Sequence record: NC_047880.1
Direction: 5' to 3' (one strand)
DNA: 64,000 bases
The notes beneath the pieces were generated by a model. It was given only the letters and a program-made list of their open reading frames with translations. It did not search any database and had not been told where the DNA came from. Numbering within the stretch: position 1 is the first letter of the stretch; each line of letters opens with the position of its first letter. Both the position numbers and the translations under genes were made by a program. This document shows positions 15,123 through 47,722 of this stretch, piece after piece.

Positions 15123-15168
15123 AGATTCAAGCAATAGTGCTTATAAATCTAACGCTGAGGAGCGTATC

Positions 15169-15612
15169 ATGACTGTATATCACATCTCAACTCTGACTTC
15201 CCCAGAAGACTTCCTTGAAGCGCGTTTTGGCCACATGGAAAACCTCGTTACTAAAATCAAAGAAGCGTTGAATCGTCCTGATATCGAAGTGTACTTAGAT
15301 GCGGACGACGGGCAGATGCTCGAAGAAGCAAACACAGAAGGTCCAGACCAGAAGATTGACGATAGCCTGATCAACGTTCACATTCGTTATGCAGGTATGT
15401 CGTCTGATGAATCGACTGAGAAAGGTGTGTGGGATATTCTGCTGGGCGTTCCTCATGTTGATAACGACATGGGCGACTGGACGAATTCATACACGCTGTT
15501 CATTCTCGATGAAGACATGGACGCTCTTGAGGAAGTTGCGATTGAAAACGGAAATCCTCATATGTTTGAGACTATCGTTGATCGCATTAACTTCTGGTTA
15601 CCTAAACTGTAA
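15169..15612 (+). CDS. hypothetical acidic protein
   Basis: SD in hairpin ACGCT-GAGG-AGCGT. Confidence 0.85.
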   Translation: MTVYHISTLTSPEDFLEARFGHMENLVTKIKEALNRPDIEVYLDADDGQMLEEANTEGPDQKIDDSLINVHIRYAGMSSDESTEKGVWDILLGVPHVDNDMGDWTNSYTLFILDEDMDALEEVAIENGNPHMFETIVDRINFWLPKL

Positions 15613-15677
15613 TTGATTTGTGAAGGGCCTTCTCTGAGGGCTCTTTGAAAATCTAACCTAAGCTGAGGAGCTTAACA

Positions 15678-16004
15678 ATGTCATCATCAACTGAAATCAC
15701 TTTCTCTTTCTCTTCTCTGACTAGCCTTGAAGTTGTGACAGGCAGTAGTGCTGTTGCCGACTATATGGGCGTGGCTGCGAATCAGAAGAAAACGTTTAGC
15801 AACAAAGAAGCGTTGGACCTGATGCAGAACAGCAACATCATTAGCGCGTTGTCTCGCTTTGACCAAGCGATTGTCAATCTGCTGATCGATCAGCAAGAGA
15901 GCCACGAAGAACAGCGCAAGCATTATGTTGAACTTGCTCGTGGTATCGATCGTCCTGAAGATGTCCATGCAGGCGTGTATCTGACAATCAGACACTGCCG
16001 CTAA
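15678..16004 (+). CDS. hypothetical protein
   Basis: SD in hairpin TAAGCT-GAGG-AGCTTA. Confidence 0.85.
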   Translation: MSSSTEITFSFSSLTSLEVVTGSSAVADYMGVAANQKKTFSNKEALDLMQNSNIISALSRFDQAIVNLLIDQQESHEEQRKHYVELARGIDRPEDVHAGVYLTIRHCR

Positions 16005-16070
16005 GATTTGTGAAGGGCATTCTAGCGAGTGTCCTTTGAAAATCACATAACCCGTTCTGAGGAGAACAAC

Positions 16071-16427
16071 ATGTCTGCTACTCAACTGCCTATCGACGCT
16101 CGCGCTTTTGATGACCTCGATAACATCGGCTTTTTGCATATCACTAACTGCCTGTCGATTATGCTTTCTCGTGGCGATTTAGAACTCGTCACTGATATTG
16201 CAGATCGCACAGTCACTGTTAAGTACAGCACTGGCGCTGTGAACAAACTCGGACACGGACTCATTGTCCTGCGTTTCCCCTCAGAAGTGCTTCAATCAGA
16301 TATTCTCGAAGACTTCGAAGTGACCGTTGATAAGAATATTGTGATTCTTATCGAACGCCAGTACAGTTCAGCCGCAACGTTTCAGCGCATTGCTGGCGTG
16401 ATTGAAGGTCTGATGTACAAACTGTGA
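16071..16427 (+). CDS. hypothetical protein
   Basis: SD in hairpin GTTCT-GAGG-AGAAC, ATG at 16071. Confidence 0.85.
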   Translation: MSATQLPIDARAFDDLDNIGFLHITNCLSIMLSRGDLELVTDIADRTVTVKYSTGAVNKLGHGLIVLRFPSEVLQSDILEDFEVTVDKNIVILIERQYSSAATFQRIAGVIEGLMYKL

Positions 16428-16491
16428 TTGTTGCTTGCAGGTTCTTACGAGAGCTTGCTGTCAACATAACCCACATGCTGAGGAGCATACA

Positions 16492-16911
16492 ATGATGAAA
16501 TTCCCAACACGCGGCCAGACTTACACACTGCGTCAAATTCTGCTTGAACTGCCTTTACGTGATTCCGCGTTCTTGCGTTTCTACCCGACTAAAGTTCGTT
16601 ATGTCGGATCAAGTGAAGCAGATATTCAAGTCATTCAGACTTCTGCATTGAGCGACGAGCATTTGCTGCTTGACCCTCAGTGGGAAAACAGTGAGTGGGT
16701 ATTCGTCGAAGAGACTTACGAGTGGATTCCTATCTTCCGCGCAAAAGATAATGCAGCAATCGAAGCGCTGTGTGTTATCGAAGCTTCAACCGAGTCATTC
16801 CATCGTAACAACGGGCACATGCACGTATACCCAAAAGGTATGCAGTTCCCGCAGTACGAACCGTATGATGAAACAGTTCACGCCAGCTATCTTGAGCGTG
16901 TAGGCGAATAA
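16492..16911 (+). CDS. hypothetical protein
   Basis: SD in hairpin ATGCT-GAGG-AGCAT, ATG at 16492. Confidence 0.85.
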   Translation: MMKFPTRGQTYTLRQILLELPLRDSAFLRFYPTKVRYVGSSEADIQVIQTSALSDEHLLLDPQWENSEWVFVEETYEWIPIFRAKDNAAIEALCVIEASTESFHRNNGHMHVYPKGMQFPQYEPYDETVHASYLERVGE

Positions 16912-16917
16912 CAAAAC

Positions 16918-16949
16918 AGGGATGCTCACAAAGGTGGGTGTCCCCTTTT
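16918..16949 (+). terminator. intrinsic terminator
   Basis: AGGGATGCTCAC...GTGGGTGTCCCCTTTT. Confidence 0.75.
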
Positions 16950-16971
16950 ACTTTCTGTTGAGGAAAAAGCT

Positions 16972-17481
16972 ATGACAAATAACACCAGTGCTATCGTTCT
17001 TCGTCTCATGACTCACGTTCATCTGATGCACAGTGTAGAGCAGGTCTGCATCATGCAGGACGTTGTACGCATCCGTCTGTCTGGGATCATGTATGACGTG
17101 CGCACAAACGGCCATACGTTCTTAGTGCATGAGATTGAATCCTCCTGCATGTCATCAACTAAGGCAGCGCGTGACCTTGAAGAGAAATTGAACGGCGAGC
17201 GTGAAGCGGTACCTGTGCACGGTTTAAAAATTCAACCACACTGGCCACCGATTATCGACAAATACACCCAGTCAATGTCTCCTCATTACATTCAAGAATA
17301 CACGGAACATTGTGGTGGGCCTGACTTAGATGGTCTCAAAACAAAAACTATCTGGGTAAGATCTCACTTGCTTGAATTCTGGCGAGCGAATGGTCTGAAC
17401 AATTTCCTCGACCACGTACTCTTTATCGAAGGTCGCATTCGCCGCGACGAGCTGTTCAAAGAAATCCAAAAGCACTGCTAG
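16972..17481 (+). CDS. hypothetical protein
   Basis: GAGG SD, 169 aa. Confidence 0.8.
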   Translation: MTNNTSAIVLRLMTHVHLMHSVEQVCIMQDVVRIRLSGIMYDVRTNGHTFLVHEIESSCMSSTKAARDLEEKLNGEREAVPVHGLKIQPHWPPIIDKYTQSMSPHYIQEYTEHCGGPDLDGLKTKTIWVRSHLLEFWRANGLNNFLDHVLFIEGRIRRDELFKEIQKHC

Positions 17482-17507
17482 TTCACTCATAACAAAAGAA
17501 GGACCAA

Positions 17508-17816
17508 ATGAAAACATTACCGCTTAACTTAGCGGGCTTTGTTGTAGCGATTTATAGTCGCATTAAGTACCGTAGGGAAAGATTTAAAAACGAAATATTG
17601 GACGCGATTATAAAATTGAATCAACGAGACCGTAACCTGTTGTTCATCGTGTTTGATTTAGAAAACAATGACAGTGGCATAACTGCATTGTCTAACATGA
17701 GTCGCAGACAGCTTGCTGACCTGTGTGCTCAAAACTACGTGCGTGTCACAGGCAGAGATTGGTCTGTGTACCACACATTCAACCAAGTAGTATCTGCAAC
17801 TAGAAGATGGGGTTAA
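17508..17816 (+). CDS. hypothetical protein
   Basis: AAGGA SD, 102 aa. Confidence 0.7.
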   Translation: MKTLPLNLAGFVVAIYSRIKYRRERFKNEILDAIIKLNQRDRNLLFIVFDLENNDSGITALSNMSRRQLADLCAQNYVRVTGRDWSVYHTFNQVVSATRRWG

Positions 17817-17818
17817 TC

Positions 17819-18259
17819 ATGAGCGATATAGATATTCTGATCCGTGAATACCAACGGGCGTATCTGAAAGCGGAGTCATCACACTGGGGAAACGTTGCGT
17901 ACCACGTTGAAGATCTTACTGAGTGTTCGATCTACATGCGATTCCGTTCAGGCAGACAAGCTCTGTGGCAGCGACCCGTTCTTGTACTCGCAACAATCGA
18001 CGTGAAAAATCCGGGCAACGGTTTCTTCTCCAAGCTTCTCGCTGAAACGAAAGCCCTGTGTAAAGAACGCGACTGGGTGCTACAGCTTGAGAACGTGTTG
18101 ACTCCGCAGTTTCGTCGCTTCCTATCTCGTGGTGGATTCACACCACAAGGCGTAGACTCTGATTCTGATCATGGCAGTATGTACTGGTTCCATGACGAAA
18201 GTATCCTCAGCACAACGCCTATGCGACCTGAGTATTTTGAATTGATCAAACAGCTCTGA
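17819..18259 (+). CDS. putative GNAT-family acetyltransferase
   Basis: LATIDVKNPGNGFFSKLL (motif A-like) and ENVLTPQFRRFLSRGGF (motif B-like). Confidence 0.55.
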   Translation: MSDIDILIREYQRAYLKAESSHWGNVAYHVEDLTECSIYMRFRSGRQALWQRPVLVLATIDVKNPGNGFFSKLLAETKALCKERDWVLQLENVLTPQFRRFLSRGGFTPQGVDSDSDHGSMYWFHDESILSTTPMRPEYFELIKQL

Positions 18260-18275
18260 ACATTGATAACCACCC

Positions 18276-18305
18276 AAGCACTGGTCTGAAAAGGTCAGTG
18301 CTTTT
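18276..18305 (+). terminator. intrinsic terminator
   Basis: AAGCACTGGTCT-GAAA-AGGTCAGTGCTT followed by TT. Confidence 0.8.
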
Positions 18306-18326
18306 CCTACATTACTGGAGCACTAC

Positions 18327-19367
18327 ATGACTAACGAAACTGGCATGATGATTGATGAAGATGTTCTTGATTACCTCGAAGACAGACTCACGCATGAGAT
18401 GCAAGACATTACCAATGCGTTGAACAACCTGCTGTACGCACACCGCGCTGTGTTGCAGATCTCTCACCTTGAATCAGATGAAGACATTGCTGCATTGTCT
18501 CACGCTGACCTTACGCTGCTGCTCAAGCTGGCTGACCCGAACAGTTCTTACGACAACGTTACTCTGTCTAACAGAAAGATTCTCGGTCTTGTGCTGAATG
18601 CTCTGAACGTTGTAGAGTACCGCCTGCCGACATATCAATCCACGCTCTTGGAGAAACGTGCCTTTGAGCTAAATGAAGTTCTCATTCTCGACAAGACTGT
18701 AGGCCAAGGTGTTATCTTCTCTGCTGCATGGAACTGGCTGCACGGCATTCAAGATGTGAACCTCGATCAGATTGGATTCAGTGAAGTGCCTGAGACAGAT
18801 GGTATCTATCTCGTACTTGATGAACATAAGCAAGTGCGTATGGGCCGACTGTTCCACAACGCAGATGATGGACTTTCGTTTATTGAGCATCATGCAAATG
18901 AAAGTTCTGCGTGGCACAAGGCAGAAGAACTCAACGAAGATGAATTGCCTATTTGCTTACTCACTAACTGGGTTCTGGTTATACCTGAGATAGTGCCTAC
19001 AGTCCGTGCAACAGGTGCACCGCTTAAAGCTGCTACTGACTGCACTCGCATCTATGCGTTCGTGACAAACCTCAGCCCTCACGTTAAGACTGAACTTGTC
19101 ACACACTTCGCAGGCATTCTTGATCGTGAACTCAATTCCGTTCAAGCGATAGGTCGTCTGTCTGAACTTGACTGGCAGAACGCAGCCCGCGCCGTTGCTG
19201 ACGATGTGCTGTTACGCCTGAGTGACCGTACATCGTGGTCTACAGAGAAAGCGTGGCCGTGCTTTGTTGCTGTGTTAAAGGAGTTGGGCTTCAACTTCGA
19301 AACCCATCAGTTCGATGCTCAATATGAGTATGGTGCTAACGATGAAGAACATGATACAGATTCGTAA
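18327..19367 (+). CDS. hypothetical protein
   Basis: 346-aa ORF with GGAG SD. Confidence 0.85.
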   Translation: MTNETGMMIDEDVLDYLEDRLTHEMQDITNALNNLLYAHRAVLQISHLESDEDIAALSHADLTLLLKLADPNSSYDNVTLSNRKILGLVLNALNVVEYRLPTYQSTLLEKRAFELNEVLILDKTVGQGVIFSAAWNWLHGIQDVNLDQIGFSEVPETDGIYLVLDEHKQVRMGRLFHNADDGLSFIEHHANESSAWHKAEELNEDELPICLLTNWVLVIPEIVPTVRATGAPLKAATDCTRIYAFVTNLSPHVKTELVTHFAGILDRELNSVQAIGRLSELDWQNAARAVADDVLLRLSDRTSWSTEKAWPCFVAVLKELGFNFETHQFDAQYEYGANDEEHDTDS

Positions 19368-19563
19368 AAAGTTATATTTGAATGTGACAGCCTTAGTGCT
19401 GTCCTTCATTCTTATCACACTGCTTTGTTGGTCCGACCTAAACATATTTGCGTTTGCATACGCTATGCTGCTGGGTCTATCTCTATTCTGCGCAGGCGTT
19501 GCTATTGGCCGCGTAGAAAAAACAATTGAAGAACTATTTGAAAAGGAAGATCAGAATGGCTAA
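19351..19563 (+). CDS. small membrane protein (2 TM)
   Basis: Two hydrophobic stretches; start approximate. Confidence 0.65.
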   Translation: MIQIRKKLYLNVTALVLSFILITLLCWSDLNIFAFAYAMLLGLSLFCAGVAIGRVEKTIEELFEKEDQNG

Positions 19564-20101
19564 GTCACTCGGCGTATACATGACATACGTGTTACGTCAC
19601 AGTCCGCAATCAATCGGTATTGCTATGGACACTCAGGGTTGGGTATCAGTTTCTGATTTCTTGCAGAAGCAACAATGGCACAAGACAAAGACTGTCTCTC
19701 TGGAAATGCTGATCGAAGAAGTGGCGAATGACGAGAAAGGCAGATTCGAGTTGAACACAAGTCAGACCAAGATTCGTTGTGTTCAAGGACACTCCGTCGA
19801 GCATGTGATTCTTAACTTGCAGGACTACATGCCTGAAGATTACCTGTATCACGGTACTGCTGAAAAGAACTTGGCAATCATCTTACAGGAAGGTCTGAGC
19901 AAGATGCGCCGCAAGCACGTTCACATCTCTGACAACCAAACTACTGCAATGCAAGTAGGTCAGCGACACGGCAAACCTGTTGTGCTTTCAGTTGACGCCG
20001 CTACTATGGCTTCTCATGGATATAAGTTCTACCGTGCAGAGAACGGAGTCATTTTGATTAACGAAGTACCTCCACGATATCTTAGGATTGCTCATGAATA
20101 A
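19556..20101 (+). CDS. kptA: RNA 2'-phosphotransferase (Tpt1/KptA family, NAD+-dependent)
   Basis: YVLRH, DEKGRFE, IRCVQGHS, LYHGT, KMRRKHVH and RHGKPVVL motifs. Confidence 0.92.
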   Translation: MAKSLGVYMTYVLRHSPQSIGIAMDTQGWVSVSDFLQKQQWHKTKTVSLEMLIEEVANDEKGRFELNTSQTKIRCVQGHSVEHVILNLQDYMPEDYLYHGTAEKNLAIILQEGLSKMRRKHVHISDNQTTAMQVGQRHGKPVVLSVDAATMASHGYKFYRAENGVILINEVPPRYLRIAHE

Positions 20102-20492
20102 AAGATACTATCAATATCTAGGTGGTCGTCGATTCGTCAGATCGCCTAGCGGTACTTGGTACTTCGTGTTTCAGCGCGATGGTGCTATGGTAACGAACAG
20201 CAACGGAACAACGTTCTACCGTACAGGTTCAGAAGTGTGGAAAGATATCACGATGACTGAACGTAACCAACTTGAACGCATGTTCGTGGAATCGAGACAA
20301 GCCGAACGCAAAGTAATGAAAGAGGAAGATATGCACTGGCTGACCCTGATCCGTGTTCTTATCAATGACTCAATGATTGAAAGCAACGAAAACAAGGCCG
20401 AATTGGCGGGGCTTTTAGATGGGCTGCGCATAGCGTCATATCAAGAGAAGCTGTCTGATCTAGACACATTATTGGACAAAACGTCTGTATAA
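20088..20492 (+). CDS. hypothetical protein
   Basis: 134-aa ORF. Confidence 0.7.
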   Translation: MLMNKRYYQYLGGRRFVRSPSGTWYFVFQRDGAMVTNSNGTTFYRTGSEVWKDITMTERNQLERMFVESRQAERKVMKEEDMHWLTLIRVLINDSMIESNENKAELAGLLDGLRIASYQEKLSDLDTLLDKTSV

Positions 20493-20516
20493 AGTGTAAG
20501 CACAACCTGATATACT
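20473..20516 (+). promoter_or_regulatory. boxed promoter, variant copy
   Basis: TGGACAAAACGT, 23 nt, then TG-A-TATACT. Confidence 0.6.
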
Positions 20517-20567
20517 ATCTATGAACGCTAGACATTCTGTTTAGCTATTTACATGAGGAACATGTAC

Positions 20568-21911
20568 ATGAAAAAGATCAAACACACTTTCCGCCTTGCT
20601 GACTTGGTTCACATCAAACCAAACACAAAGAAAACCCGCAGTCACTTCGAATCCGATGTTGATGCAATCGTCGTTGGTCGTGATGATGAAGAAGACAAGT
20701 ATGACCTTCACATTAAAGGTGTTGGTGTAAGTGCTTGGTACCCAGCAGAAGATCTGATTCTGATCAAACATGATCAGAGCGAACTGCTTGACCAGTGGGA
20801 ATCAGGCAACTACGGGAAAAAGAAGCGCAAGATTCCTAAGACGCTGCGCAACTTCACAGCGATTCTGCCTGTGACCTGCAACGCCGATTGTTCGTTCTGT
20901 CCAGAGAAAGAGATGGAAACGAAAGCAGGCCAGAAAGAATGGCAAGACAATTTGATCGCTTCTATTCTTGCGCATGAACATCGCTTCGACCACGTATCAA
21001 TCAGTGGAGGCGAACCTACTCTGCGTCAGAAATTCCTGTTCGAAACGATCGACCGTATTCTGTCTGAGACTTCAATCAAGAAAGTCGGTCTGACCTCCAA
21101 CGGCCAATTCCTTGAGAAGCATAATAACACTCTGGACTTTCTTGATCGTAACACAACGCTTGAGATGACGAGCAAGCTGTCGCATCTGAATATCAGTATG
21201 CACTCATTCAACCGTGACCGTGCAAACGAAATTATGGGCGTGAAGTATCAGCACAGTCTGGAAGAGCTTGCCCGCTTTCGTCGTCAGTTAGGTCGCAACG
21301 TTAGCTTCCACATTAACTTTGTTCTGAATGAAAAGTCCGATGACTATCAGAAAGAGTTTCTGGCAGCACAAGCTTTCATGAAAGAACATCCGTACATTGA
21401 TGTTGTATTCCGTGTTGACTACAACAACAAAGAGCTGTCGCAAGAGCTGCGCGACTACGCTATGGCCGTTGAAGAGTATCACGCACAATCTGCTGATGCT
21501 GTTAAACGCCGCTTGAAGTTCAAGGCGCCTAAAGTATTACGTCCTAAGCTTGTTCAGAAGTTTGATGGAGTCTTCGGGCATAACGAAGATCACGAAGAAG
21601 GTGCTTGGACAACGGGCTGTCCGTCTTGCTTCACTCACTGTTCTGATTCCGTCAACAATAGTCATGCGTACTTGAAAGCGAGTTCATACGAACCGAATGA
21701 AGATGAAGATGAATACACTGAGATGGTGTTTCACATGGACGGTAAGTTGTACTTCGATTGGTCGCGTGTGGATGTAGTGCCTGCTAAGAAACCGAAAGCA
21801 AAGAAAGTTGTGGCGAAAGCTAAGAAAGAAAAGACTAAACGCGATTGTGTGTACTACCCGCGTTCTGGTTGTTCTTATGCTCGTACTGGCGTAGGCTCTT
21901 GTCAATTCTAA
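20568..21911 (+). CDS. radical SAM protein with extra N-terminal domain and Cys-containing tail
   Basis: CNADCSFC (CxxxCxxC) at 20877-20900, SISGGEPT, LTSNG, LNISMHS. Confidence 0.9.
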   Translation: MKKIKHTFRLADLVHIKPNTKKTRSHFESDVDAIVVGRDDEEDKYDLHIKGVGVSAWYPAEDLILIKHDQSELLDQWESGNYGKKKRKIPKTLRNFTAILPVTCNADCSFCPEKEMETKAGQKEWQDNLIASILAHEHRFDHVSISGGEPTLRQKFLFETIDRILSETSIKKVGLTSNGQFLEKHNNTLDFLDRNTTLEMTSKLSHLNISMHSFNRDRANEIMGVKYQHSLEELARFRRQLGRNVSFHINFVLNEKSDDYQKEFLAAQAFMKEHPYIDVVFRVDYNNKELSQELRDYAMAVEEYHAQSADAVKRRLKFKAPKVLRPKLVQKFDGVFGHNEDHEEGAWTTGCPSCFTHCSDSVNNSHAYLKASSYEPNEDEDEYTEMVFHMDGKLYFDWSRVDVVPAKKPKAKKVVAKAKKEKTKRDCVYYPRSGCSYARTGVGSCQF

Positions 21912-21922
21912 GGGGATAAAAA

Positions 21923-22477
21923 ATGAAACCTGTTGAACATTCCGAAGGTTACTGGGCATCTGCACTCTGCCCTCTTCTGCCTACAGCGATTCATAAAGAT
22001 CGCGCATGGCACGGCAAGAAACTGTTTCTTGCAAAACTTGATCGCGTAGAGTTGCAAGCGAACCGTGTGCAATTCCGTGGCATCTCTAAATGTCGTCTGT
22101 GTAACTGTCAGAACGGTGGAGGTACCTTTGAGTATCTCGGCTGGCGTTGGCCTCAAGGCTATTCTCATTACATCGACGAGCACAACATCAAGCCGTCTGC
22201 TGAGTTCTTTGAATTCGTTAATCGCTGTACGACCGACCCGAAGATCAAAGTAGACGTTAGCACAGGCGTAACGAAAAAAGAGATGTTGCTTCTGGAGCAT
22301 GTTGCATGTGCCTATGCAGGCAGCGAGCAAGTGCGCCTCCATGCAATGTATATTGTGGCTAAGATGCTACGTGCTGAACGCGGCCAGAACATGCCGCACA
22401 CTAACGTGGTTATTGTTGATGAAAATAGTAGCGAAGACGAACTCCGCGCTGCTCTGAAAAGAATGGGAGTCTTATAA
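21923..22477 (+). CDS. hypothetical protein (CxxC + WPxGYxHYIxxHNxKP motif)
   Basis: CRLCNC..WRWPQGYSHYIDEHNIKPS, a probable metal-binding motif. Confidence 0.75.
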   Translation: MKPVEHSEGYWASALCPLLPTAIHKDRAWHGKKLFLAKLDRVELQANRVQFRGISKCRLCNCQNGGGTFEYLGWRWPQGYSHYIDEHNIKPSAEFFEFVNRCTTDPKIKVDVSTGVTKKEMLLLEHVACAYAGSEQVRLHAMYIVAKMLRAERGQNMPHTNVVIVDENSSEDELRAALKRMGVL

Positions 22478-22809
22478 TGTATTCTGTTTATTACACTGCG
22501 TACCATACGTGGCGCAAACGCTTTTCTGCTGTCGTCGTGTTGTTAGTTCTGACTCTGATTGCTCAGGGTTACATGAGCCAAACAATGGCGAACAGTTACT
22601 GGATGTGGATTGGCATTCTGTACATCATACCGCTTGCTGTTAGTTGGTACTACATGGCTTTCTATAGTGACTGTCTGATTTCTGATTTGCAGGCAGGAAC
22701 TCACGTTGTCTGTCCTGGCTATGACAAGTGGAAAAAGCGACACATCGCTTGGTACACAAAACGTTTTGGCAGCGCACCTCGTATTAAACAGATGGGGGAT
22801 AATAACTAA
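22477..22809 (+). CDS. membrane protein (2 TM)
   Basis: Two hydrophobic helices. Confidence 0.75.
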   Translation: MYSVYYTAYHTWRKRFSAVVVLLVLTLIAQGYMSQTMANSYWMWIGILYIIPLAVSWYYMAFYSDCLISDLQAGTHVVCPGYDKWKKRHIAWYTKRFGSAPRIKQMGDNN

Positions 22810-23135: not shown

Positions 23136-23138
23136 CTA

Positions 23139-23615: not shown

Positions 23616-23619
23616 AGAA

Positions 23620-23877: not shown

Positions 23878-23879
23878 GT

Positions 23880-24579: not shown

Positions 24580-24586
24580 GTGAATC

Positions 24587-24922: not shown

Positions 24923-24973
24923 TCGATACGATTCTGTAAATCCCCTCTATAACTGTTGAGTAAGGAAAAGAAA

Positions 24974-37518: not shown

Positions 37519-37522
37519 TGCT

Positions 37523-38384: not shown

Positions 38385-38421
38385 GCCGTAATGCTCACGG
38401 GCATTATACAGGAGATACAAA

Positions 38422-39720: not shown

Positions 39721-39769
39721 GCTTCTTCCGATTCACACTCAATCATACCTAACATTGTAGGGAACAAAA

Positions 39770-40201
39770 ATGGTACAGTTTAATAAAAAGATTCTTGTAG
39801 TTGACCGCGTGTCTCTCGTAATGAATGACGAAACTATTGCTGCGTGGGGAATAGCTGCTGGTGCTGATCGTGAAGGCGCAGCGACTAACACTGCCCTGAT
39901 ACTCGGCAAGCTGCAACGTGATATCGCTTGTTCGCTTTATACGAACCATCCAGAAGCTGCGCTGCGTGGAGAAATTCTCTGGACCTCTTACGGTAGCGTG
40001 TCACTGCAAGGTCTGTTCGTCATTGCGTCTAATGCTGACAATGAACTCCTCAACTCTATCGAAGATCAGGATTACCTGTGCCATCTTCGTAGCATTCAGG
40101 AAGTTGCCACTGCCTCTGGTTTTAACGTCAACATCCAGCGCGTTCAAACGTCATTCCCGATCAATACAATCGAAGTACCTGCGTCTCTCTTAAACTCCTG
40201 A
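39770..40201 (+). CDS. hypothetical protein
   Basis: AGGGA SD, 143 aa. Confidence 0.8.
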   Translation: MVQFNKKILVVDRVSLVMNDETIAAWGIAAGADREGAATNTALILGKLQRDIACSLYTNHPEAALRGEILWTSYGSVSLQGLFVIASNADNELLNSIEDQDYLCHLRSIQEVATASGFNVNIQRVQTSFPINTIEVPASLLNS

Positions 40202-40210
40202 GGTGATATC

Positions 40211-40510
40211 ATGACAACAAAGACAATGACAGTACCGAATGCTGTAATCGTTTGCGCCATGCGTGAGTCTAGTTCTTTCATGGGGCAGAAAGCAGACGGC
40301 TGGGTTTATCTGCCAAGCAAAGAAGCGCTCGAACAATTCAAGAAACACATTGAACAACACAAGCGCATTGAGGAGTACAGCTACATTGTGAGCATAGACC
40401 TCAAAGTAATCAATGAAGCGGGTATGCTGCAACTCGCGGACTGCATCAACGACGAAGATGATCGCCCGTGGCTGTGGTCGAATGATGACTTCTCTGTCAA
40501 GCTGTGGTAG
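40211..40510 (+). CDS. hypothetical protein
   Basis: GAGGTG SD, 99 aa. Confidence 0.8.
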   Translation: MTTKTMTVPNAVIVCAMRESSSFMGQKADGWVYLPSKEALEQFKKHIEQHKRIEEYSYIVSIDLKVINEAGMLQLADCINDEDDRPWLWSNDDFSVKLW

Positions 40511-40515
40511 CTATC

Positions 40516-40574
40516 AAGTCTGCACAAAATAGGCTGAAATAGCGGTATCAATAAAAGCCTCAATATGATACAAT
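40516..40574 (+). promoter_or_regulatory. boxed promoter copy
   Basis: AAGTCTGCACAAAATAGGCTGAAATAG, 23 nt, then TG-A-TACAAT. Confidence 0.85.
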
Positions 40575-40627
40575 AGAAGCGTAGCAGATGCTGCGCTTTT
40601 TTACTTTATAGTCTGAGGAGACTCGTT

Positions 40628-41092
40628 ATGTTAGAACCAATCAAATTCAATCAGTCTGAAATCGATCTGCAAGACGCAATCATGGAAGTAGCTGTGAGCA
40701 ACGTTATCAAGCTGACACCTAACTGGACTGATATTTGTCTTGCTGCTGCCCGCCTGTATCTGACAACCTGCGATATGCTTAACGGAACAATTCCTGAAAT
40801 CCGTTTCATTCATAACGGAAAGTCTACTCGCCTTGAGTACCGTCTCAAAGAAGTTGAAGGTACCGAAGATTTTGAAGCTGACGCTGCGGACATTGAAAAG
40901 CAGAAAGCAATTCTCGACGCGATGTTTGACACTGCTGAGAAATCAGAAGACGGATTCAGTTACGGCGACTTGCTGATCTGTTCGGGTCGTTTGTTCATGA
41001 TTGGTTACGATGGTCTTGCTGGAACCAAAGACGTTCTGAAATTCCGTCACAACAAAAAGAACTTCACTATGCACCTTGTTGAGGCCAAATAA
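40628..41092 (+). CDS. hypothetical protein
   Basis: SD in hairpin AGTCT-GAGG-AGACT. Confidence 0.85.
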   Translation: MLEPIKFNQSEIDLQDAIMEVAVSNVIKLTPNWTDICLAAARLYLTTCDMLNGTIPEIRFIHNGKSTRLEYRLKEVEGTEDFEADAADIEKQKAILDAMFDTAEKSEDGFSYGDLLICSGRLFMIGYDGLAGTKDVLKFRHNKKNFTMHLVEAK

Positions 41093-41725
41093 ATGGAAAC
41101 CTATTTCGTACTCAAACGTCACATGCGCGATAGCCGCAATCTTGCATTCTTCCACGACGATAAGTGTCTGGCGATGTTCTCAACACGCTTGATGCAACGT
41201 GTGCTGGAAATTCTTGAGCTGCCTACAGTTATGTCCACAATCGTTTGGGCAGACGACAAAGAAACGCACAACCGTCTGTTGATCGTTGACCGCTCATTCA
41301 TAACACGCGACAACGAAATGCGCACTAACTTTGAACTGTCGATGATCACTTCGCCTGCTGGCCGTCCTGATTATTCGATACCTGTTGATGTGTGTCGTAT
41401 GCACGACGGCATCACACCGTACATCAAAGAGATTCGCATTGAACAGGCGATTGCTCAACTCATGCTGAAAGAGATTCAAACTCTGCTGCTGTCTGAACCT
41501 AAAGAAGACGACGAAGACATGTATGAGTCTCTTTTAGACGGCGACGAAGTATCGGACATAGAATTCTCTCCTGAGTTCCTGCGTCAGGAAATTGCCGACG
41601 GCTATCGCACAGAAGACTACATGCTTCGCCTGAGCATTGAAGACGTATTGGAGATACACGATAAAGAAGTCGGAGTATTCATGCCAGACCACGAAGACCA
41701 AGACCAAACACCTTTCTATTATTAA
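41093..41725 (+). CDS. hypothetical protein
   Basis: GAGG SD, 210 aa. Confidence 0.8.
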   Translation: METYFVLKRHMRDSRNLAFFHDDKCLAMFSTRLMQRVLEILELPTVMSTIVWADDKETHNRLLIVDRSFITRDNEMRTNFELSMITSPAGRPDYSIPVDVCRMHDGITPYIKEIRIEQAIAQLMLKEIQTLLLSEPKEDDEDMYESLLDGDEVSDIEFSPEFLRQEIADGYRTEDYMLRLSIEDVLEIHDKEVGVFMPDHEDQDQTPFYY

Positions 41726-41736
41726 GGCAGTACAGA

Positions 41737-41928
41737 ATGAAAACAACAAGTGACCTTGTCAAAGAACTCAAACAACATGGCGTCTTGATTATTGAAGACC
41801 ACATGAAACACACTCTGCCTGATTTAACTTTCACGCTTGATTGTATGTGTATCACTTATTCTAAGCGTGAGATTGAAAGTACCAAGCTGGGCCGTGTTGT
41901 TCGTATTCGAATGATGGCCGCACACTAA
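41737..41928 (+). CDS. hypothetical protein
   Basis: 63 aa, AAGG SD. Confidence 0.65.
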   Translation: MKTTSDLVKELKQHGVLIIEDHMKHTLPDLTFTLDCMCITYSKREIESTKLGRVVRIRMMAAH

Positions 41929-42052
41929 TACATGCGGTTTGCCTGACGTGCCTCACACTCAACCACGCATTTGCGGGTGGCATAGTCGGGCTCTTTTTGA
42001 AATGTGTTTGTTTGACGCGCATTACATAAAGATAAACCAACAGGAGGCTGTT

Positions 42053-42391
42053 ATGAACAGATTTACCGCAGTATCGAAAGACGCACAAATCGTTTTGCTG
42101 AGTTGCGCTCTCGCAGGCACGCTGAACATTCTAGGCAGAGAACATCAAGACGGCGGAAAGCAGGTATTCGAATTCACCCTTGCTAAAATTGGCCTCGCAC
42201 CAGACGAGTTCAAATTCATTCTTGATCAAATGTCGTCTGATGTGGAAGAAGAAGTCAGATCTGTTACTGGTCTGCCTGACGAAGACGAAGACACCGCGTC
42301 TGATTTAGACACTATGGAAGACAGCCCAAACAAAGGCGAATATGATACAAGCCGCATGAACAAAGATGGCTGGGAAGATTTAGACCGCTAA
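42053..42391 (+). CDS. hypothetical acidic protein
   Basis: SD in hairpin AACAG-GAGG-CTGTT, ATG at 42053. Confidence 0.8.
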   Translation: MNRFTAVSKDAQIVLLSCALAGTLNILGREHQDGGKQVFEFTLAKIGLAPDEFKFILDQMSSDVEEEVRSVTGLPDEDEDTASDLDTMEDSPNKGEYDTSRMNKDGWEDLDR

Positions 42392-42395
42392 TGTG

Positions 42396-42454
42396 AAGTC
42401 TGCATAAAACAGGCTAAAATAGAGGTTGAGACATATATCAACACCTGTTATACT
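42396..42454 (+). promoter_or_regulatory. boxed promoter copy driving a non-coding segment
   Basis: AAGTCTGCATAAAACAGGCTAAAATAG, 23 nt, then TG-T-TATACT; TTGAGA -35. Confidence 0.85.
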
Positions 42455-42460
42455 TATTAG

Positions 42461-42600
42461 ACAGCGAGACATATGTGTTGCTGAGTTCGATTGATAGCTT
42501 TTAGCTGTATGTGAACTTTTCCCCCGCATACAGCTCTTTTTAAAGTGACTTGATTGAGGTTGCTTTAAAAAAGACCAGCTATTTGATGTATGCAAAAAGT
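42461..42600 (+). ncRNA. candidate structured small RNA
   Basis: ORF-free ~140 nt between two promoters; 5' hairpin plus a three-way junction (helices 42494-99/42577-82, 42503-11/42527-35, 42536-49/42559-73). Confidence 0.5.
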
Positions 42601-42643
42601 TGGACGAAATAGCGGTTGTGCAAAATGCTCTGCCTGCTATACT
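42601..42643 (+). promoter_or_regulatory. boxed promoter, variant copy
   Basis: TGGACGAAATAG, 22 nt, then TG-C-TATACT; TTGTGC -35. Confidence 0.75.
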
Positions 42644-42708
42644 TATATCTCTAGCGCAATAACGCGCACAACGTAGTATCTCATATACAATACTGAGGAG
42701 TATTAATC

Positions 42709-44247
42709 ATGGCTATCGAAACTAACACAAATCTGGTTGGCAAAACTATCGTTCTGTTGGACGGCACTAAAACTAAAATCACTGATGCAATCGCGTCTGG
42801 TTATAAAGTGAAAAGCCGCACAGCCCGCGTATCAACTCGTTGTGTAGTTAAAGACGGCGCTCACTTCCGTGAAATCGAGCGCATGAACATGAGCCAGTTA
42901 GAAGATACAGGCGAAGGTTACGTGAAAGTGAAAGACGCGAAAGCGACCAAGTCTGCTAAAACCGCGAAAGCTGAAAAGCCAGCTAAGACCGCGAAGACAA
43001 CCAAAGCAGATAAGAAACCTGCTAAGCCGTCTAAGAAAGACGAACCTGCTCCGAAAGTTCGCAGCAAGAAAGAAAAAGAAGCGAAGCAACAAGAAGATTA
43101 CTTGAGCCTCGCAACTGCGATCATTAAAGGCGGCAAGAAAGTTGCGCCTGTCGAAATCGAAGCAACCGACGCTGAACTGACAGACGCGATTGCAAAACGT
43201 CTGGTCGATGTTCTCGAAAATACCGAAATCGCCCGTGTAGCTGCTGACAACAAAACGCCGATCGCAAACGCAATCGCAATCACGTACGGCGCTGAGTTCG
43301 CCGAAGAAGCTAACGTGCTTCAAATCACGCTGAACCTGCAATACGCTAAGCCTGTAGTATCAGCGCCTGAGCCTGAGCTGGATGAAGCTGTTGCTCGTCG
43401 TGCTGCTAAACTCGCCGCTAAGAAAGTGGGCAAAGTGCTGGCGAAAGCGATCAAAACTGCATTCGACCTCGAAGATGCAAACGACCTGCTGCCTGGTACC
43501 GTGTTGCTCAAAGCAGAAGAAGAGTTTATCTTCTGCGGCGAAAGCGCGAAACATGCAGGCAAAGCGCTGCTGTACAAAACAGCCGACGATAAGTTTGCGT
43601 CTGTCGCTGCTGATGCTCTGACTGAATACGAAATTGTTCAGGAAGAAGCTGAGGCCGAAGAAGAGGAAGAGGAAGAGGAAGCTGATGAAGACCTCGATGA
43701 CTCTGACGCTTATTCATACATCGCCGTTGATAAAGACCAGCTCGCACTCGTTAACAAGAAAGTGACTGCTAAGTATCACGCTGCAACCGCTGAACGTTTC
43801 GGCGTTAGCGAAGAAGCTCTGGTCCCTGGCCTTGTCGTTACAGACGGCGACACAACGTTTGCTTATCTGGGCTTCGATAGCAAAGGCGGTATGCTCGTCA
43901 TTGACAATGAAGCCGAAGATCAAGATGTTCTGTGCTACTCAAAAGCAGACATTAAATCTCTGGTAGACTTCTCGCCAGTAGTTGGCGAAGCGGACGAAGC
44001 TGATTCTGACGACGAAGAAGACCTCGACGACGAAGAAGAAGCTGCTGATGACGAAGAGGAAGAGGAAGCAGACGACGAAGAAGAAGCTGATGATGACTTC
44101 GACTTCGGCTCTGATATCCCGTCAGAAGATCTTGAAGACCTGACCGCTGATGAACTGCGTGACCGTGTTGTTCACTTAGGTCTGTCTACCCAGAAGAAAG
44201 CAGATCGCATGGACGAAGACGAACTCCGCGCACTGCTGACTGAATAA
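42709..44247 (+). CDS. multi-domain protein with a K/A/P-rich linker and poly-D/E tracts
   Basis: SD hairpin AATACT-GAGG-AGTATT; 512 aa. Confidence 0.9.
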   Translation: MAIETNTNLVGKTIVLLDGTKTKITDAIASGYKVKSRTARVSTRCVVKDGAHFREIERMNMSQLEDTGEGYVKVKDAKATKSAKTAKAEKPAKTAKTTKADKKPAKPSKKDEPAPKVRSKKEKEAKQQEDYLSLATAIIKGGKKVAPVEIEATDAELTDAIAKRLVDVLENTEIARVAADNKTPIANAIAITYGAEFAEEANVLQITLNLQYAKPVVSAPEPELDEAVARRAAKLAAKKVGKVLAKAIKTAFDLEDANDLLPGTVLLKAEEEFIFCGESAKHAGKALLYKTADDKFASVAADALTEYEIVQEEAEAEEEEEEEEADEDLDDSDAYSYIAVDKDQLALVNKKVTAKYHAATAERFGVSEEALVPGLVVTDGDTTFAYLGFDSKGGMLVIDNEAEDQDVLCYSKADIKSLVDFSPVVGEADEADSDDEEDLDDEEEAADDEEEEEADDEEEADDDFDFGSDIPSEDLEDLTADELRDRVVHLGLSTQKKADRMDEDELRALLTE

Positions 44248-44332
44248 GCTGTACTCACTGTAAACTGATATGATAGCGGTCTATGAAGGCCGCTATACTT
44301 TGACTAATCGCGCTGATTGAGGAATCACAACT

Positions 44333-45568
44333 ATGTCAACTTCAAACAAAATGTTATTGAACGCCCGTGTACGTCGTCTTGATGGTACTGTTACTCACAT
44401 CAACAAGATCAACACTAACGGTTATAGCACTGATGCCAAGGGGCCTCAGATACCTGTTAAGCGTCTCGTTCTTGCAGGCAAATCTTTGAAAGAGATTGAA
44501 GCGCCGTTCGCAAAAGACGAGTGCATCATCTCACAAGGCGTTACAGTCAAACTGAACAAACGCCAGCAACGTGAACTCGCAGATAAAACGCTTGATGAAA
44601 AAGCGTTGCGTCCTGACTTCGGTAGCTTGGTGTTTATCGACCCTGACACAGGCAAAGCGACTGACGGCAAGAAAGTGAAAGTGAAAGCTGGTGCGAAAGA
44701 AAGTCTGAAAGAAACGCGCAAGCATAACAAAGAGCCGAAAGTTAAGAAAGCAGAGAAAGTTTCTGCCAAGAACGATCTGAAAGATTCACTCGACCTGATT
44801 GACGAACGTAAGGCGCCTAAGTCTGCGCTCGTTGAAATGCTCACTGCTACACTCGAAGGCGATACGACGAAAGAACAGCGTAAGCAATTCGCTGATGCGT
44901 TTGGTATCGACTGGAAAGCTGCTAAGAAGCTCGGCGGCAAGGGTATCGTTAAGCAACTCGGACGTAAAGCTGCGCAAGCTGCTGCTGACAAGCTGAATGC
45001 TACTGTGACCTCTGATGCGTTCATTAAGCAGATGCCTCCTGAGTTGAAGCGTCTGATGCGTGAAGGTTCGCTGACCCTGAACAAAACACAGATTGAGCGT
45101 GTACTGTCTGCGCTTGGTCTTGATACGAAGTTCTATGCTATCGCAATGCAGAACTTCCTGGGTAATCTGACACTGGCTATCAAGCCTGAAGAAGTGAAGA
45201 CTACGCAGAAGAAAAAGAAAGCTGCACGTCCGCAGTATGCGACTGATAAAGACGCGAAGCGCCGTGTAAAGAAGATGACAATAAAGCTGTTGGCGCCTGA
45301 TGCGAAAGGTATGAAGACTGCTAAGGCTCACCTGAAACAGGCGAAAGCAATCTTAGCCTCTAAGCTGGGTATCGCTACAAAAGATATTAAACGCGGTCTG
45401 ATTGTGTATCACAAGAACGGCGTTGATTACATGTTCGTGGCCTGTGATGTACGCGGTCCGATCTTCATCGACAAAGATGGTGACCCGGCAGTGTATACTT
45501 ACGCGAACCTGCAAGACACGTTCGACTTCACACTGACGCCAACCTCTGAGCTGGACGCCGCTGTATGA
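44333..45568 (+). CDS. Lys-rich protein, probable paralog of the 42709 protein
   Basis: SD hairpin TGATT-GAGG-AATCA; N- and C-terminal segments resemble those of the 42709 protein. Confidence 0.88.
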   Translation: MSTSNKMLLNARVRRLDGTVTHINKINTNGYSTDAKGPQIPVKRLVLAGKSLKEIEAPFAKDECIISQGVTVKLNKRQQRELADKTLDEKALRPDFGSLVFIDPDTGKATDGKKVKVKAGAKESLKETRKHNKEPKVKKAEKVSAKNDLKDSLDLIDERKAPKSALVEMLTATLEGDTTKEQRKQFADAFGIDWKAAKKLGGKGIVKQLGRKAAQAAADKLNATVTSDAFIKQMPPELKRLMREGSLTLNKTQIERVLSALGLDTKFYAIAMQNFLGNLTLAIKPEEVKTTQKKKKAARPQYATDKDAKRRVKKMTIKLLAPDAKGMKTAKAHLKQAKAILASKLGIATKDIKRGLIVYHKNGVDYMFVACDVRGPIFIDKDGDPAVYTYANLQDTFDFTLTPTSELDAAV

Positions 45569-45954
45569 AAACATCTGAAATAGTTATGACAGGTGTATTT
45601 GCTCAACTGTATGCGCGGCTAGTAATGGCCGCCATCAATAAAGTTCACATCTACTACATGGACTTAGCGCCTGTAGTGTTCGGTGTGCAATTCAGTAAGA
45701 TGGATAACTCGCAAGTAGAAGCTGTCTGGCAGATGCTGCGTATGTCCATGCAAATGGATATGCAACACAATAGACCGCCGCTCGCTGCGCTGTTTGTCAG
45801 TCGCGCTTCTGAGTTAAAGAAACCTGGCCGCTCATTCTTCAATGAGTATGAGAAGATTACAGGAATTAAGCTCTCCTACGAAGACTGGCAGAAGCTCGTT
45901 GAAGAAGTATGGGCGCATTATTCAATGCAAGATTTCGTTGGAGAGCAATCATGA
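45565..45954 (+). CDS. small putative DNA-binding protein (PPLxALxV...PGxxF family)
   Basis: RPPLAALFVSRASELKKPGRSFF motif; ATGA overlap. Confidence 0.55.
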   Translation: MKTSEIVMTGVFAQLYARLVMAAINKVHIYYMDLAPVVFGVQFSKMDNSQVEAVWQMLRMSMQMDMQHNRPPLAALFVSRASELKKPGRSFFNEYEKITGIKLSYEDWQKLVEEVWAHYSMQDFVGEQS

Positions 45955-46430
45955 AAAAGTTAAAAATCAAATCGTCAATCAGTCGCGGTGGTTACAAGCC
46001 GAAGTCTGATGACGAAGCCCGCAAGCTGGTAGTTGAGTTTATTCTCGGTACTATCGGTACTGCACCAACTGTTCTGAGCCAGACGTTAGTTCTGAACGTT
46101 GCGAACTACAACTGGCTGACGTCAATACCTGATACTGCTAAGCCTACGCAATCGAATCAATCAGTGTTGCATAAAACTGTAAAAGAACTTAATGAGTTCT
46201 GTCGATTGAACAAATTTCCACTGGGCTTACTAATTATGCCCCACACATCATCGAGTGACTATAGCGGTGATGAAGTGATAGCAATCCCGTGGAAACATGT
46301 TGCGGCGAATTCACAAAGTCAGTCCGCTGTTAATTCGATTTTCGAAACAGTGATCGCTGATGGATATCCGCAGTTCGTAGCCGATGCAAAAACTTTGCAC
46401 GTAGACGTAGAGGGTAGCGATGTTTTATGA
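45951..46430 (+). CDS. hypothetical protein
   Basis: GGAG SD, ATG at 45951. Confidence 0.75.
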   Translation: MKKLKIKSSISRGGYKPKSDDEARKLVVEFILGTIGTAPTVLSQTLVLNVANYNWLTSIPDTAKPTQSNQSVLHKTVKELNEFCRLNKFPLGLLIMPHTSSSDYSGDEVIAIPWKHVAANSQSQSAVNSIFETVIADGYPQFVADAKTLHVDVEGSDVL

Positions 46431-47700
46431 TCACGTATTCACGCATGACGAGCGGCAGGCGTTGCTGCTCCTTGCTGAATCATTCTTTCTGGTAAAAACT
46501 GAATGTCCCGACTATCTCAAAAAGTCTAAGCACTCGATTGAGATTCGACACACGATTAATCATCGTGGGAAAGAACGCCGGTCGGGTCACATTGTAACGT
46601 CATTCGTTCCGCGTATTCACATGAGCGTTATTCAGCGTCTTGTTCGTGTGATTCGTGACGACTACGATATCCGCGCAGCACATCACCTGAGCAAGTTGTT
46701 TGAACTCGGACTCGGCGTGCCGAAGCAACGTGACATTGCACTTTACCTGAGTGACTACTCAAAAGAAGCTGATCCGAAAGGTGTGGGTATGAAGTATATC
46801 CGCAAGCTGATTAATGAGTATCACCGCAAGTATCGTCGCAGCATGGCAGGTAGTCGCTGGATTATGCCAGCCGCGTATACTGCGAACATGATGCACATGC
46901 AGTCTTTCATTCACTTGAAAGAGAACGGTTATGCGAAGCAACTCAAAGTGCCTGATGGAATACCTGTGGTTCTCGTGTACAACAACACGAACCATGAGCG
47001 TTCTGAGTTTACTTTGTGTGACGCATTCATGATAAGCCCGCTGGGCTTCCCTGTACCGTTCGCGCAGATTGCATTACGTCCTGAATTCAAAGCTGTGCCG
47101 AAAACGTTTTGCTCGAAAGCACTTCGCGGTCGTGGTATGTACAGCATGGTGATGGGTGTTGTTCATTGGTCTGATACTGATTCTGTGAAGCACTTCCGCG
47201 AACTGATGGAAATTGATGCTGATAGCTATCTGTCATTGCTTGATAGTGAACAGTACATGGACCGACGTTCGCCTGAGTATCAAGCGCTGTGCGACAAGCG
47301 CGCCGAGTATAACGAACAACGTGTAGAGATGAATGAAGTCCTCGCTAAGTTCGGAACTACGAAGCGTATTCTTAAACCCGAGCAGCAGGCTAAGTTAGAC
47401 CGTGCTCTCAAGTTCTTCGCAGACCGTAAAGACTTCCTCAAGGAGTTTGATCAGTTTGAGAAGAAAGAACAGCACAAGGCAGCGAAGCAATTCGCAGTAG
47501 CCAGTGCGCAGTTCGCAGCAATTGACTGTGGTACTATCATGGACCGCACAACGTATATGGCGGTCAGTACGACACTCGATAAAGTTCACCACATTCTTGG
47601 GAAGTGGGGATTTACTACTGTCGATACTGTTAATGCTAGTTTGAAACACTCACTCATGACTTACGGCGAATCAAAAGCAACTCGTCGCTGGTCACTATAA
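46420..47700 (+). CDS. hypothetical protein with one Sel1-like repeat and a coiled coil
   Basis: AAHHLSKLFELGLGVPKQRDIALY resembles the Sel1 consensus. Confidence 0.7.
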   Translation: MFYDHVFTHDERQALLLLAESFFLVKTECPDYLKKSKHSIEIRHTINHRGKERRSGHIVTSFVPRIHMSVIQRLVRVIRDDYDIRAAHHLSKLFELGLGVPKQRDIALYLSDYSKEADPKGVGMKYIRKLINEYHRKYRRSMAGSRWIMPAAYTANMMHMQSFIHLKENGYAKQLKVPDGIPVVLVYNNTNHERSEFTLCDAFMISPLGFPVPFAQIALRPEFKAVPKTFCSKALRGRGMYSMVMGVVHWSDTDSVKHFRELMEIDADSYLSLLDSEQYMDRRSPEYQALCDKRAEYNEQRVEMNEVLAKFGTTKRILKPEQQAKLDRALKFFADRKDFLKEFDQFEKKEQHKAAKQFAVASAQFAAIDCGTIMDRTTYMAVSTTLDKVHHILGKWGFTTVDTVNASLKHSLMTYGESKATRRWSL

Positions 47701-47722
47701 CCTTTATCTGAGGAGATATGTA

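Follow-up and report, generated by a model that had tools for sequence, protein, structure and literature searches.

A Shine-Dalgarno-in-tetraloop hairpin with covarying stems in early-gene leaders of Erwinia phage vB_EamM_Y3 and its relatives, and its possible role as a translational gate

The window considered here is the last 64 kb (64,000 nucleotides (nt), record positions 197,366–261,365) of the genome of Erwinia phage vB_EamM_Y3 (KY984068 / NC_047880; 261,365 base pairs (bp); genus Sasquatchvirus), a phage placed in the PaBG/Lu11-like group of jumbo myoviruses (PMC7412058); by megablast, 12 kb of the window matched this phage at 100% identity. Positions are those of the window unless the record is named. 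All 92 annotated genes of the window (gp242–gp333) are on the + strand, and just 5' of nine of them, gp263–266, 311, 314, 315, 316 and 320, the Shine-Dalgarno (SD) sequence GAGG forms the loop of a small inverted repeat whose 3' end is 0–5 nt from the GenBank-annotated ATG. An initial annotation, made from the letters alone, had listed nine such hairpins with perfect, wobble-free stems, and each is where it was said to be, on the + strand, with exactly the sequence given and with wholly Watson–Crick stems of 5 bp at seven sites and 6 bp at 15659 and 42689. The nine are:

15152–15165, + strand: SD hairpin ACGCT-GAGG-AGCGT of gp263, 3 nt 5' of the ATG at 15169
15659–15674, + strand: SD hairpin TAAGCT-GAGG-AGCTTA of gp264, ATG at 15678
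16054–16067, + strand: SD hairpin GTTCT-GAGG-AGAAC of gp265, ATG at 16071
16475–16488, + strand: SD hairpin ATGCT-GAGG-AGCAT of gp266, ATG at 16492
40610–40623, + strand: SD hairpin AGTCT-GAGG-AGACT of gp311, ATG at 40628
42039–42052, + strand: SD hairpin AACAG-GAGG-CTGTT of gp314, adjoining the ATG at 42053
42689–42704, + strand: SD hairpin AATACT-GAGG-AGTATT of gp315, ATG at 42709
44314–44327, + strand: SD hairpin TGATT-GAGG-AATCA of gp316, ATG at 44333
47705–47718, + strand: SD hairpin TATCT-GAGG-AGATA of gp320, ATG at 47723

Chance does not account for these nine. GAGG stands at the SD position of 28 of the 92 annotated starts, and in nine of the 28 it is flanked by perfect stems of at least 5 bp; on shuffling the flanks the mean was 0.09 and the maximum 2 in 5000 trials, so that the enrichment over shuffled sequence which the initial annotation had predicted is indeed found. 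All seven CTGAGGAG octamers of the window are SDs of this set, each with 3–4 extra complementary pairs. The reverse strand of the window has no such hairpin despite 154 occurrences of GAGG (97 on the + strand), and the scan, extended to the remaining 197 kb and approximately 240 genes of Y3, met no GAGG-tetraloop hairpin 5' of any gene there; only two further GAGG-tetraloop hairpins exist in the genome, both antisense to genes. A wider scan of the whole genome, for loops of 3–7 nt containing GG, yielded a few looser sites and just one outside the window that is built alike, CATCT-CAGG-AGATG, 3 nt 5' of the gp181 ATG (record position 155542, minus strand). The same scan of 64 kb of the T4 early region gave no GAGG-loop hairpin and four heterogeneous, unrelated G-containing ones. 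The hairpins of Y3 are real.

Their grouping resembles that of a translational regulon, as had been proposed, in being a small set confined to two early-gene blocks. The first is the gp263–266 unit, each of whose four cistrons has its own hairpin and which is closed by a terminator-like site at 16919–16944. The second, at 40.6–50.7 kb, has hairpins at gp311, 314, 315, 316 and 320, and these five are essentially its cistrons without start/stop overlap with the preceding gene. That the set takes in most of a cluster of acidic and basic proteins was an overstatement, with three genes only (gp315, 316 and 320) belonging to it, though these three are all the independently initiated cistrons of the acidic/basic block.

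How well is the hairpin kept elsewhere? The comparison took in the syntenic regions of 15 relatives, which represent at least five genera, with orthologues of the hairpin genes located by tblastn: Alexandravirus (several SNUABM phages, Alexandra and AD1), Snuvirus SNU7, Rivsvirus SNU5, Yoloswag, SNU25 (close to Snuvirus SNU7, unassigned), Yersinia phage fHe-Yen9-02 and one metagenomic contig. Scans of IMG/VR for additional relatives returned almost only genomes already in GenBank. The hairpin is retained in the orthologous leaders of the 15 with at least 13 different stems. Orthologues of gp263 have stems ACGCT or AAGCT and loops GAGG or AAGG; those of gp264 have TAAGCT, AAGCT, ACGCT, TAGCT, TTAGCT or GTTCT; those of gp265 have GTTCT or TAAGCT, with a U.G wobble at pair 3 in SNU35; and those of gp266 have ATGCT, TGCT, TAAGCT, TGTTCT or ATGTTCT. 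At gp311, the A-U that Y3 has as pair 5 corresponds to U-A in both Alexandravirus and Snuvirus, to C-G in SNU5 and to U.G in Yoloswag, and in the gp315 hairpin, which RNAalifold predicts from 14 leaders, pair 3 has undergone a compensatory A-U to U-A change in fHe-Yen9-02. The gp314, gp316 and gp320 hairpins are almost invariant, versus a protein identity of just 30–68%: that of gp314 is unchanged in 10 relatives (proteins 30–41% identical), that of gp316 is unchanged in 12 and absent in the three most distant phages (fHe-Yen9-02, Yoloswag and SNU5), and that of gp320 has a stem of 5–6 bp in 14, with a 4-bp ATCT/AGAT stem and larger loop in fHe-Yen9-02. Relatives also have extra members, for instance TTCTT-GAGG-AAGAA 5' of the gp294 orthologue in SNU7 and SNU25.

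From these leaders 52 distinct 20-mers, orthologous and paralogous hairpins together, were placed in an ungapped alignment. The five inner pairs are approximately 99% paired, with 3–4 Watson–Crick types at each of pairs 3–5, and three positions outside the stem are paired in just 15–37% of cells, a sharp 5-bp boundary. The covariation score is 0.543 versus 0.131 for shuffled alignments, none of 500 shuffles reaching it, and sliding the partner column makes it collapse, though the rows are not independent events, since leader cassettes have been exchanged between genes within the gp263–266 array. The earlier surmise that structure rather than sequence is selected, with pairing kept in orthologous leaders, thus survives this comparison: judged from the alignment, it is the pairing that is kept, and the pairing is selected. 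As to the exchange itself, whole leader cassettes stand at different genes in relatives, with TAAGCT 5' of three genes in SNU17 and GTTCT 5' of the gp264 orthologue in SNU25, which suggests gene conversion within the array.

Could the inverted repeats be a feature of the DNA, be it a protein-binding site, a cruciform or the outcome of quasipalindrome template switching, and have no function as RNA? Template-switch mutation can also perfect inverted repeats, which is a caveat on the covariation, and the non-Watson–Crick cells among the 52 hairpins (3 wobble and 2 other mismatches) are too few to show whether there is an excess of G.U on the sense strand. Against this, the repeats occur only around coding-strand SDs, in fixed register to the start, at the same orthologous genes across genera, and nowhere else 5' of genes in 197 kb. 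A sequence-specific DNA binder does not fit arms that vary from site to site, and a purely DNA-level origin is hardly credible to us.

The anatomy is economical. Four positions, U8, G11, G12 and A13, never vary among the 52 hairpins, and four more, C7, G9, A10 and G14, reach a conservation of at least 90%, together giving CU-GAGG-AG, of which UGAGGAG has seven possible pairs (one G.U) with the 3' end of 16S rRNA. As AG extends the SD, the closing pairs C-G and U-A are the complement of that AG, and where the SD continues differently, as GAGGAA in gp316 and GAGGCU in gp314, the 5' arm matches the alteration. Conserved bases are all explained by the SD (U..GGAG) and by pairing, with nothing conserved beyond these. 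The loop varies at its first two bases only (GAGG, AAGG, ATGG); GG occupies loop positions 3–4, and pairing in the 3' arm begins with the A of GGA. The gp314 leader of Y3 has a further repeat (42039–42063, AACAG-GAGG-CTGTT-ATG-AACAG) that lets the 3' arm pair either upstream, with the SD in the loop, or downstream, with the AUG in a triloop; since relatives are without it, the downstream repeat is probably fortuitous.

Looser relatives of the hairpin had also been put forward, and these have had mixed fortunes. The site 5' of gp274 stands in part, its loop being of 4 or 6 nt in SNU35 and SNU17 and its stem a weak one of 4 bp in fHe-Yen9-02, with loss in SNU30, SNU1 and the uncultivated virus genome (UViG) contig; that at 54096 (gp325) is kept in no relative, and that at 39763 (gp309) shows a one-sided uncompensated change. 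The first, which the wider scan also picked up, is:

20550–20566, + strand: looser member TACATG-AGGAA-CATGTA of gp274

Two other genes of the window, gp251 and gp253, share an identical ribosome-binding site (RBS) string, ATTGCCAAGGGGCATAC (9735–9746 and 10797–10808), which forms a 4-bp TGCC-AAGG-GGCA hairpin and is a weaker form of the SD-in-tetraloop idea. At the gathering score, Rfam 15 gave no match in the 64-kb window.

The SDs within the hairpins are strong. Their duplex with the anti-SD averages −8.8 versus −5.75 kcal/mol; they are the window's strongest, with eight of the nine inside the top 12 of 92. Predicted free energies (dG) of the hairpins at 28 °C range from about −3.5 to −7.7 kcal/mol with flanks and from −2.9 to −6.6 for the bare stem-loop. 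As the strongest SDs coincide with stable hairpins, the stem has to be paid for by the SD. When 75-nt contexts were folded, the hairpin was in the minimum free energy (MFE) or centroid structure of seven of the nine leaders with the 16 nt upstream unpaired, and the sequence around the hairpins was no more structured than shuffles. Those 16 nt are poor in G, which makes up 10% of them in Y3 and 9% in 78 orthologous tracts, compared with 19% in control leaders and 24% overall, and each 52–100 nt stretch scanned, from the leader to 30 nt of coding sequence, has just one GGA. An RNA thermometer was considered and rejected, the predicted dG reaching 0 only at 55–81 °C, with the hairpins folded at 15, 28 and 37 °C.

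Does the hairpin show its SD to the ribosome or hide it? The initial annotation had allowed for display, whereby the loop would be a toehold, sparing the SD from long-range structure and hastening its capture by the 30S subunit. The leaders are otherwise unstructured, the SDs strong, and there is a hairpin at every independently initiated cistron of both blocks, all of which such an enhancer could explain. RNA geometry makes it physically doubtful, in that a 4-nt loop offers about two stackable bases and should not be able to pair with the anti-SD unless the stem opens. At 28 °C more than 99% of the stems are predicted to be folded, and in leaders so poor in G the SD has nothing with which to mispair. 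Display is a very long shot. Since a 4-nt loop cannot form an anti-SD helix of 4–7 bp, and three of the seven SD bases are in the stem, the SD in the folded state is, on geometric grounds, presumably masked and not displayed.

The interpretation that we tentatively favour, with a probability of roughly 0.4, is that the element acts as an RNA stem-loop in the leaders of early mRNAs, gating a strong SD in cis and so throttling and insulating early-gene translation. It is preferred because the stem is weaker than the SD duplex and has an unstructured, G-poor tract just upstream. With GAGG in the tetraloop and the flanking U, A and G paired in the folded leader, no SD/anti-SD helix would form with a 30S subunit until the 5–7 bp stem opened. 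Meanwhile a waiting 30S subunit would be held on the G-poor, unstructured tract upstream (ribosome standby), and as the short stem breathes the strong SD would capture the anti-SD and displace the stem. The net effect would be a throttled, context-insulated initiation at each independently initiated cistron of the two early blocks, and the folded state may shield an RBS that has no ribosome bound. That the action is at the level of RNA, that its sign is inhibitory and that standby is the means, we infer from the features just described.

Rescue of structured RBSs by single-stranded standby tails has experimental precedent (PMC5934652). The MS2 structured RBS with standby, from the same source, resembles the Y3 leaders in being of a phage and in having an SD within a stable local stem-loop with a single-stranded tract directly 5' (PMC5934652). 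It differs in that its start codon is also in the helix and that it is a single site; in Y3 the SD occupies the loop and upper stem, with its core in the tetraloop, the AUG is outside the hairpin, the unpaired G-poor tract is adjacent, at least nine genes with covarying stems are involved, and standby would be by extension from MS2.

Several considerations weigh against such a gate. The uniformity of the design (loop always 4 nt, GG at positions 3–4, stem 5–7 bp) exceeds what simple attenuation needs, the RBS-masking hairpins of T4 being heterogeneous by comparison. That the strongest SDs are kept only to be masked points to some on/off condition, and the intrinsic model names none. Further, the upstream tracts of Y3 are A/T-rich and G-poor, and not clearly CA-rich.

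The surroundings of the hairpins bear on when they are transcribed and on what else they may do. The elements concerned in the gp263 and gp315 leaders are:

15094–15122, + strand: sigma70-type promoter of the gp263–266 unit, TTCACT-17-TATAAT with TG (consensus scan, 10/12, extended −10)
15129–15142, + strand: hairpin A of the gp263 leader, AAGC-AATAGT-GCTT, 5'-proximal, 9 nt 5' of the SD hairpin
42638–42643, + strand: TGnTATACT extended −10 box of the gp315 leader, TGNTATA(A/C)T being conserved in most of 14 leaders
42654–42667, + strand: hairpin A of the gp315 leader, GCGC-AATAAC-GCGC, 5'-proximal, its stem covarying in relatives

Among 14 phages the order of the gp315 leader is a TGnTATA(A/C)T box, a spacer of about 7–10 nt, hairpin A (a covarying 4–5 bp stem with an AAUAAC or AAUAGU loop), a C/A-rich linker, the SD hairpin and the AUG. 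Conserved promoters of TGnTATAAT type lie some 30–50 nt 5' of both the gp263 and gp315 hairpins, so that the promoter context is of early type and the full hairpin should, from the sequence, be inside transcripts from host-type early promoters. This separates them from the hairpins of T4 genes e, soc, 49 and I-TevI (PMC3014915), which likewise hide the SD or AUG, with translation delayed or limited as a result. In T4 the 5' arm contains a late promoter, and transcripts made late are therefore without the hairpin; moreover the T4 hairpins are individually different, whereas those of Y3 repeat a single design. A late promoter of the T4 lysozyme type in or abutting the 5' arm was rejected on account of these conserved upstream promoters, and a TATAAAT-like string 5' of gp263 is not conserved in orthologues.

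Hairpin A is itself one of a family, NNGC-AAUAAC/AAUAGU/AAUGAC-GCNN, with five occurrences in the Y3 genome, all in the window and all on the + strand (9710–9723, 10455–10470, 15129–15142, 42654–42667 and 52413–52428), each 5–10 nt 3' of a −10-like box and 25–45 nt 5' of an ATG (gp251, 252, 263, 315 and 323). Its AAUAAC loop recalls that of the T4 gene 43 translational operator (UAAUAACUC in the T4 sequence), a matter of resemblance only. The gp311 leader (40575–40609) is of another kind, with a −10-like box followed by a terminator-like hairpin of 8–11 bp and a T-run (AGAAGCGTAGC-AGAT-GCTGCGCTTTT), about 9 nt 5' of the SD hairpin, an attenuator-like layout that is conserved in relatives. The three spacers within the gp263–266 unit (15613–15658, 16005–16053 and 16428–16474) have in common a stop, a GC-rich stem-loop, CUUUGAAAAUC, an A/C-rich and G-poor tract and then the SD hairpin.

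Strong SDs and 5' stem-loops are established mRNA stabilisers, and it may be asked whether the hairpin is mainly a stability or processing element near a new 5' end, generated by transcription or by intercistronic cleavage in the AU-rich CUUUGAAAAUC spacers, that protects the RBS and message from decay dependent on the 5' end. The shared layout of the gp264–266 spacers does resemble that of processed polycistronic units, and the gp316 hairpin may lie approximately 8 nt from a predicted start site. It is hairpin A, though, that occupies the 5' end of the gp263 and gp315 leaders, with the SD hairpin some 25–45 nt inside, and a stabiliser has no need of an SD in the loop at fixed register. As a general explanation this is improbable; a stability or processing role for the gp264–266 spacers is possible.

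Two annotations near at hand merit comment. The gp317 annotation begins at 45625 and gives 109 aa; a start at the ATG of position 45565, which overlaps the stop of gp316 (ATGA), would give 129 aa (45565–45954), matching the length and 4-nt overlap of the SNU32, AD1 and Alexandra orthologues, and the annotated start is probably too far downstream. The 'RNA ligase' gp239 (record 195864–196331, outside the window) has as its best match the anti-CBASS (cyclic oligonucleotide-based antiphage signalling system) phosphodiesterase family Acb1 (PF23474, E = 8e-13).

Almost as likely as the cis-acting gate, and to be taken seriously even if at about one chance in three, is that the hairpin is an operator for a trans-acting factor: a phage RNA-binding repressor, a structure-specific endoribonuclease (RegA- or RegB-like) or host CsrA/RsmA, reading GGA(G) at the junction of loop and 3' stem and thereby shutting off or timing translation of the early regulon. 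Uniform geometry is what such a reader would want, as is a small discrete set, nine genes in Y3 with a few extra in relatives, every one of them early. GGA never varies among the hairpins, and GGAG, present at eight of the nine Y3 sites (gp316 has GGAA), spans the junction of loop and stem. T4 RegB acts on GGAG, rarely GGAU, in the SDs of early mRNAs, cutting between G and A with stimulation by ribosomal protein S1 through A-rich sequence on the 3' side. In its best S1-independent substrate, an artificial one, GGA lies in a loop and the bases after it are paired; its natural targets are SDs of early genes followed by A-rich sequence (PMC1702504). The Y3 sites are similar in having GGAG in SDs of early genes, with sigma70-type promoters 5' of gp263 and gp315, and in being followed by sequence that is A-rich by eye. 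They differ in that just GG is in the loop, with the A and G paired, and RegB is generally inhibited by secondary structure (PMC1702504). CsrA for its part favours GGA in the loops of short hairpins overlapping SDs (PMC2896534), and its sites share with the Y3 hairpins short variable stems and an invariant GGA at the SD.

The initial annotation had named RegB and CsrA as analogies for a reader of this kind, and neither these nor T4 RegA fits Y3 well. No homologue of RegB was found by phmmer and blastp against 2880 six-frame open reading frame (ORF) segments of the whole Y3 genome (best E 0.27), this being a single-sequence search that a very distant or analogous nuclease could escape, and phmmer with T4 RegA against all six-frame ORFs of Y3 found none either (E ≥ 1.5). 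The CsrA/RsmA consensus is an A(N)GGA hexaloop (PMC2896534), compared with a 4-nt loop in Y3 whose A of GGA is paired. The conserved A (A-N-GGA; RUACARGGAUGU), two bases before GGA, is A in 3 of the 52 hairpins and G in 49, and instead of the two or more GGA sites per leader that would permit bridging by a CsrA dimer there is one each, so that a CsrA site as a good fit was rejected. Another candidate, gp229 ('CRISPR/Cas system associated'), was dismissed as a Cas6-type hairpin RNase on proving to be a PD-(D/E)XK nuclease.

Within the 40.6–50.7 kb block basic proteins are available to bind RNA: the hairpin-bearing gp316, lysine-rich with an isoelectric point (pI) of 9.8, has strongly acidic neighbours in gp315 (pI 4.4) and gp320 (pI 4.1), and gp319, which has no hairpin, has a pI of 9.4. 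As a candidate binder gp316 gains nothing from its AlphaFold model, made with six orthologues, which is mostly low-confidence or disordered (predicted local distance difference test, pLDDT, 46) and uninformative. PDB sequence searches with gp316 and gp319 gave nothing useful. None of the ten proteins scanned with Pfam (those of the nine hairpin genes and gp319) reaches a curated cut-off, the PHROGs matches of the nine are of unknown function only, and no function could be assigned to any of the ten. There is, besides, no conserved base outside the SD and the pairing, and the extra conserved bulge or loop base usual in dedicated protein sites was not seen among the 52 hairpins. A protein or nuclease reader is possible, and nothing found speaks positively for one.

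More specific, and rather unlikely, is the proposal that PaBG/Y3-type jumbo phages have an undescribed post-transcriptional shut-off system with the hairpins as its operators, in which a phage protein unlike RegB and RegA in sequence would read the GGAG junction. By cutting at that junction of the 5–7 bp hairpin, or by blocking the ribosome, it would turn the early regulon off, and such a system, if real, would be the analogue of T4 RegB/RegA in a structure-specific form.

Taken singly, RBS hairpins and translational operators are classical. The replicase operators of MS2 and PP7 and the T4 gene 43 operator also have a free stem and fixed loop at or next to an RBS, and differ in that their loop or bulge bases are protein-specific, with no relation to the SD, and that each serves a single gene; in Y3 there are no such bases beyond the SD. 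What differs is the reuse of one compact SD-in-tetraloop design at around ten early genes, kept with compensatory changes in several genera of jumbo phages. No description of the motif was found in the searchable literature, the coverage of which does not extend to the original Y3 paper, and from its sequence the element looks like a previously undescribed translation-control element.

What might it offer? Its stems, at least 13 of them, are a natural set with which to see how a ribosome, or a factor, handles an SD locked in a tetraloop, and the hairpins mark an early regulon of about ten proteins without assigned function. A protein or nuclease that proved to read the hairpin would give phages a new tool of RNA control, one that is both sequence- and structure-specific. 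If instead the element is intrinsic, these phages would have in it a natural standby-assisted, insulated RBS, like the designs that synthetic biologists build by hand.

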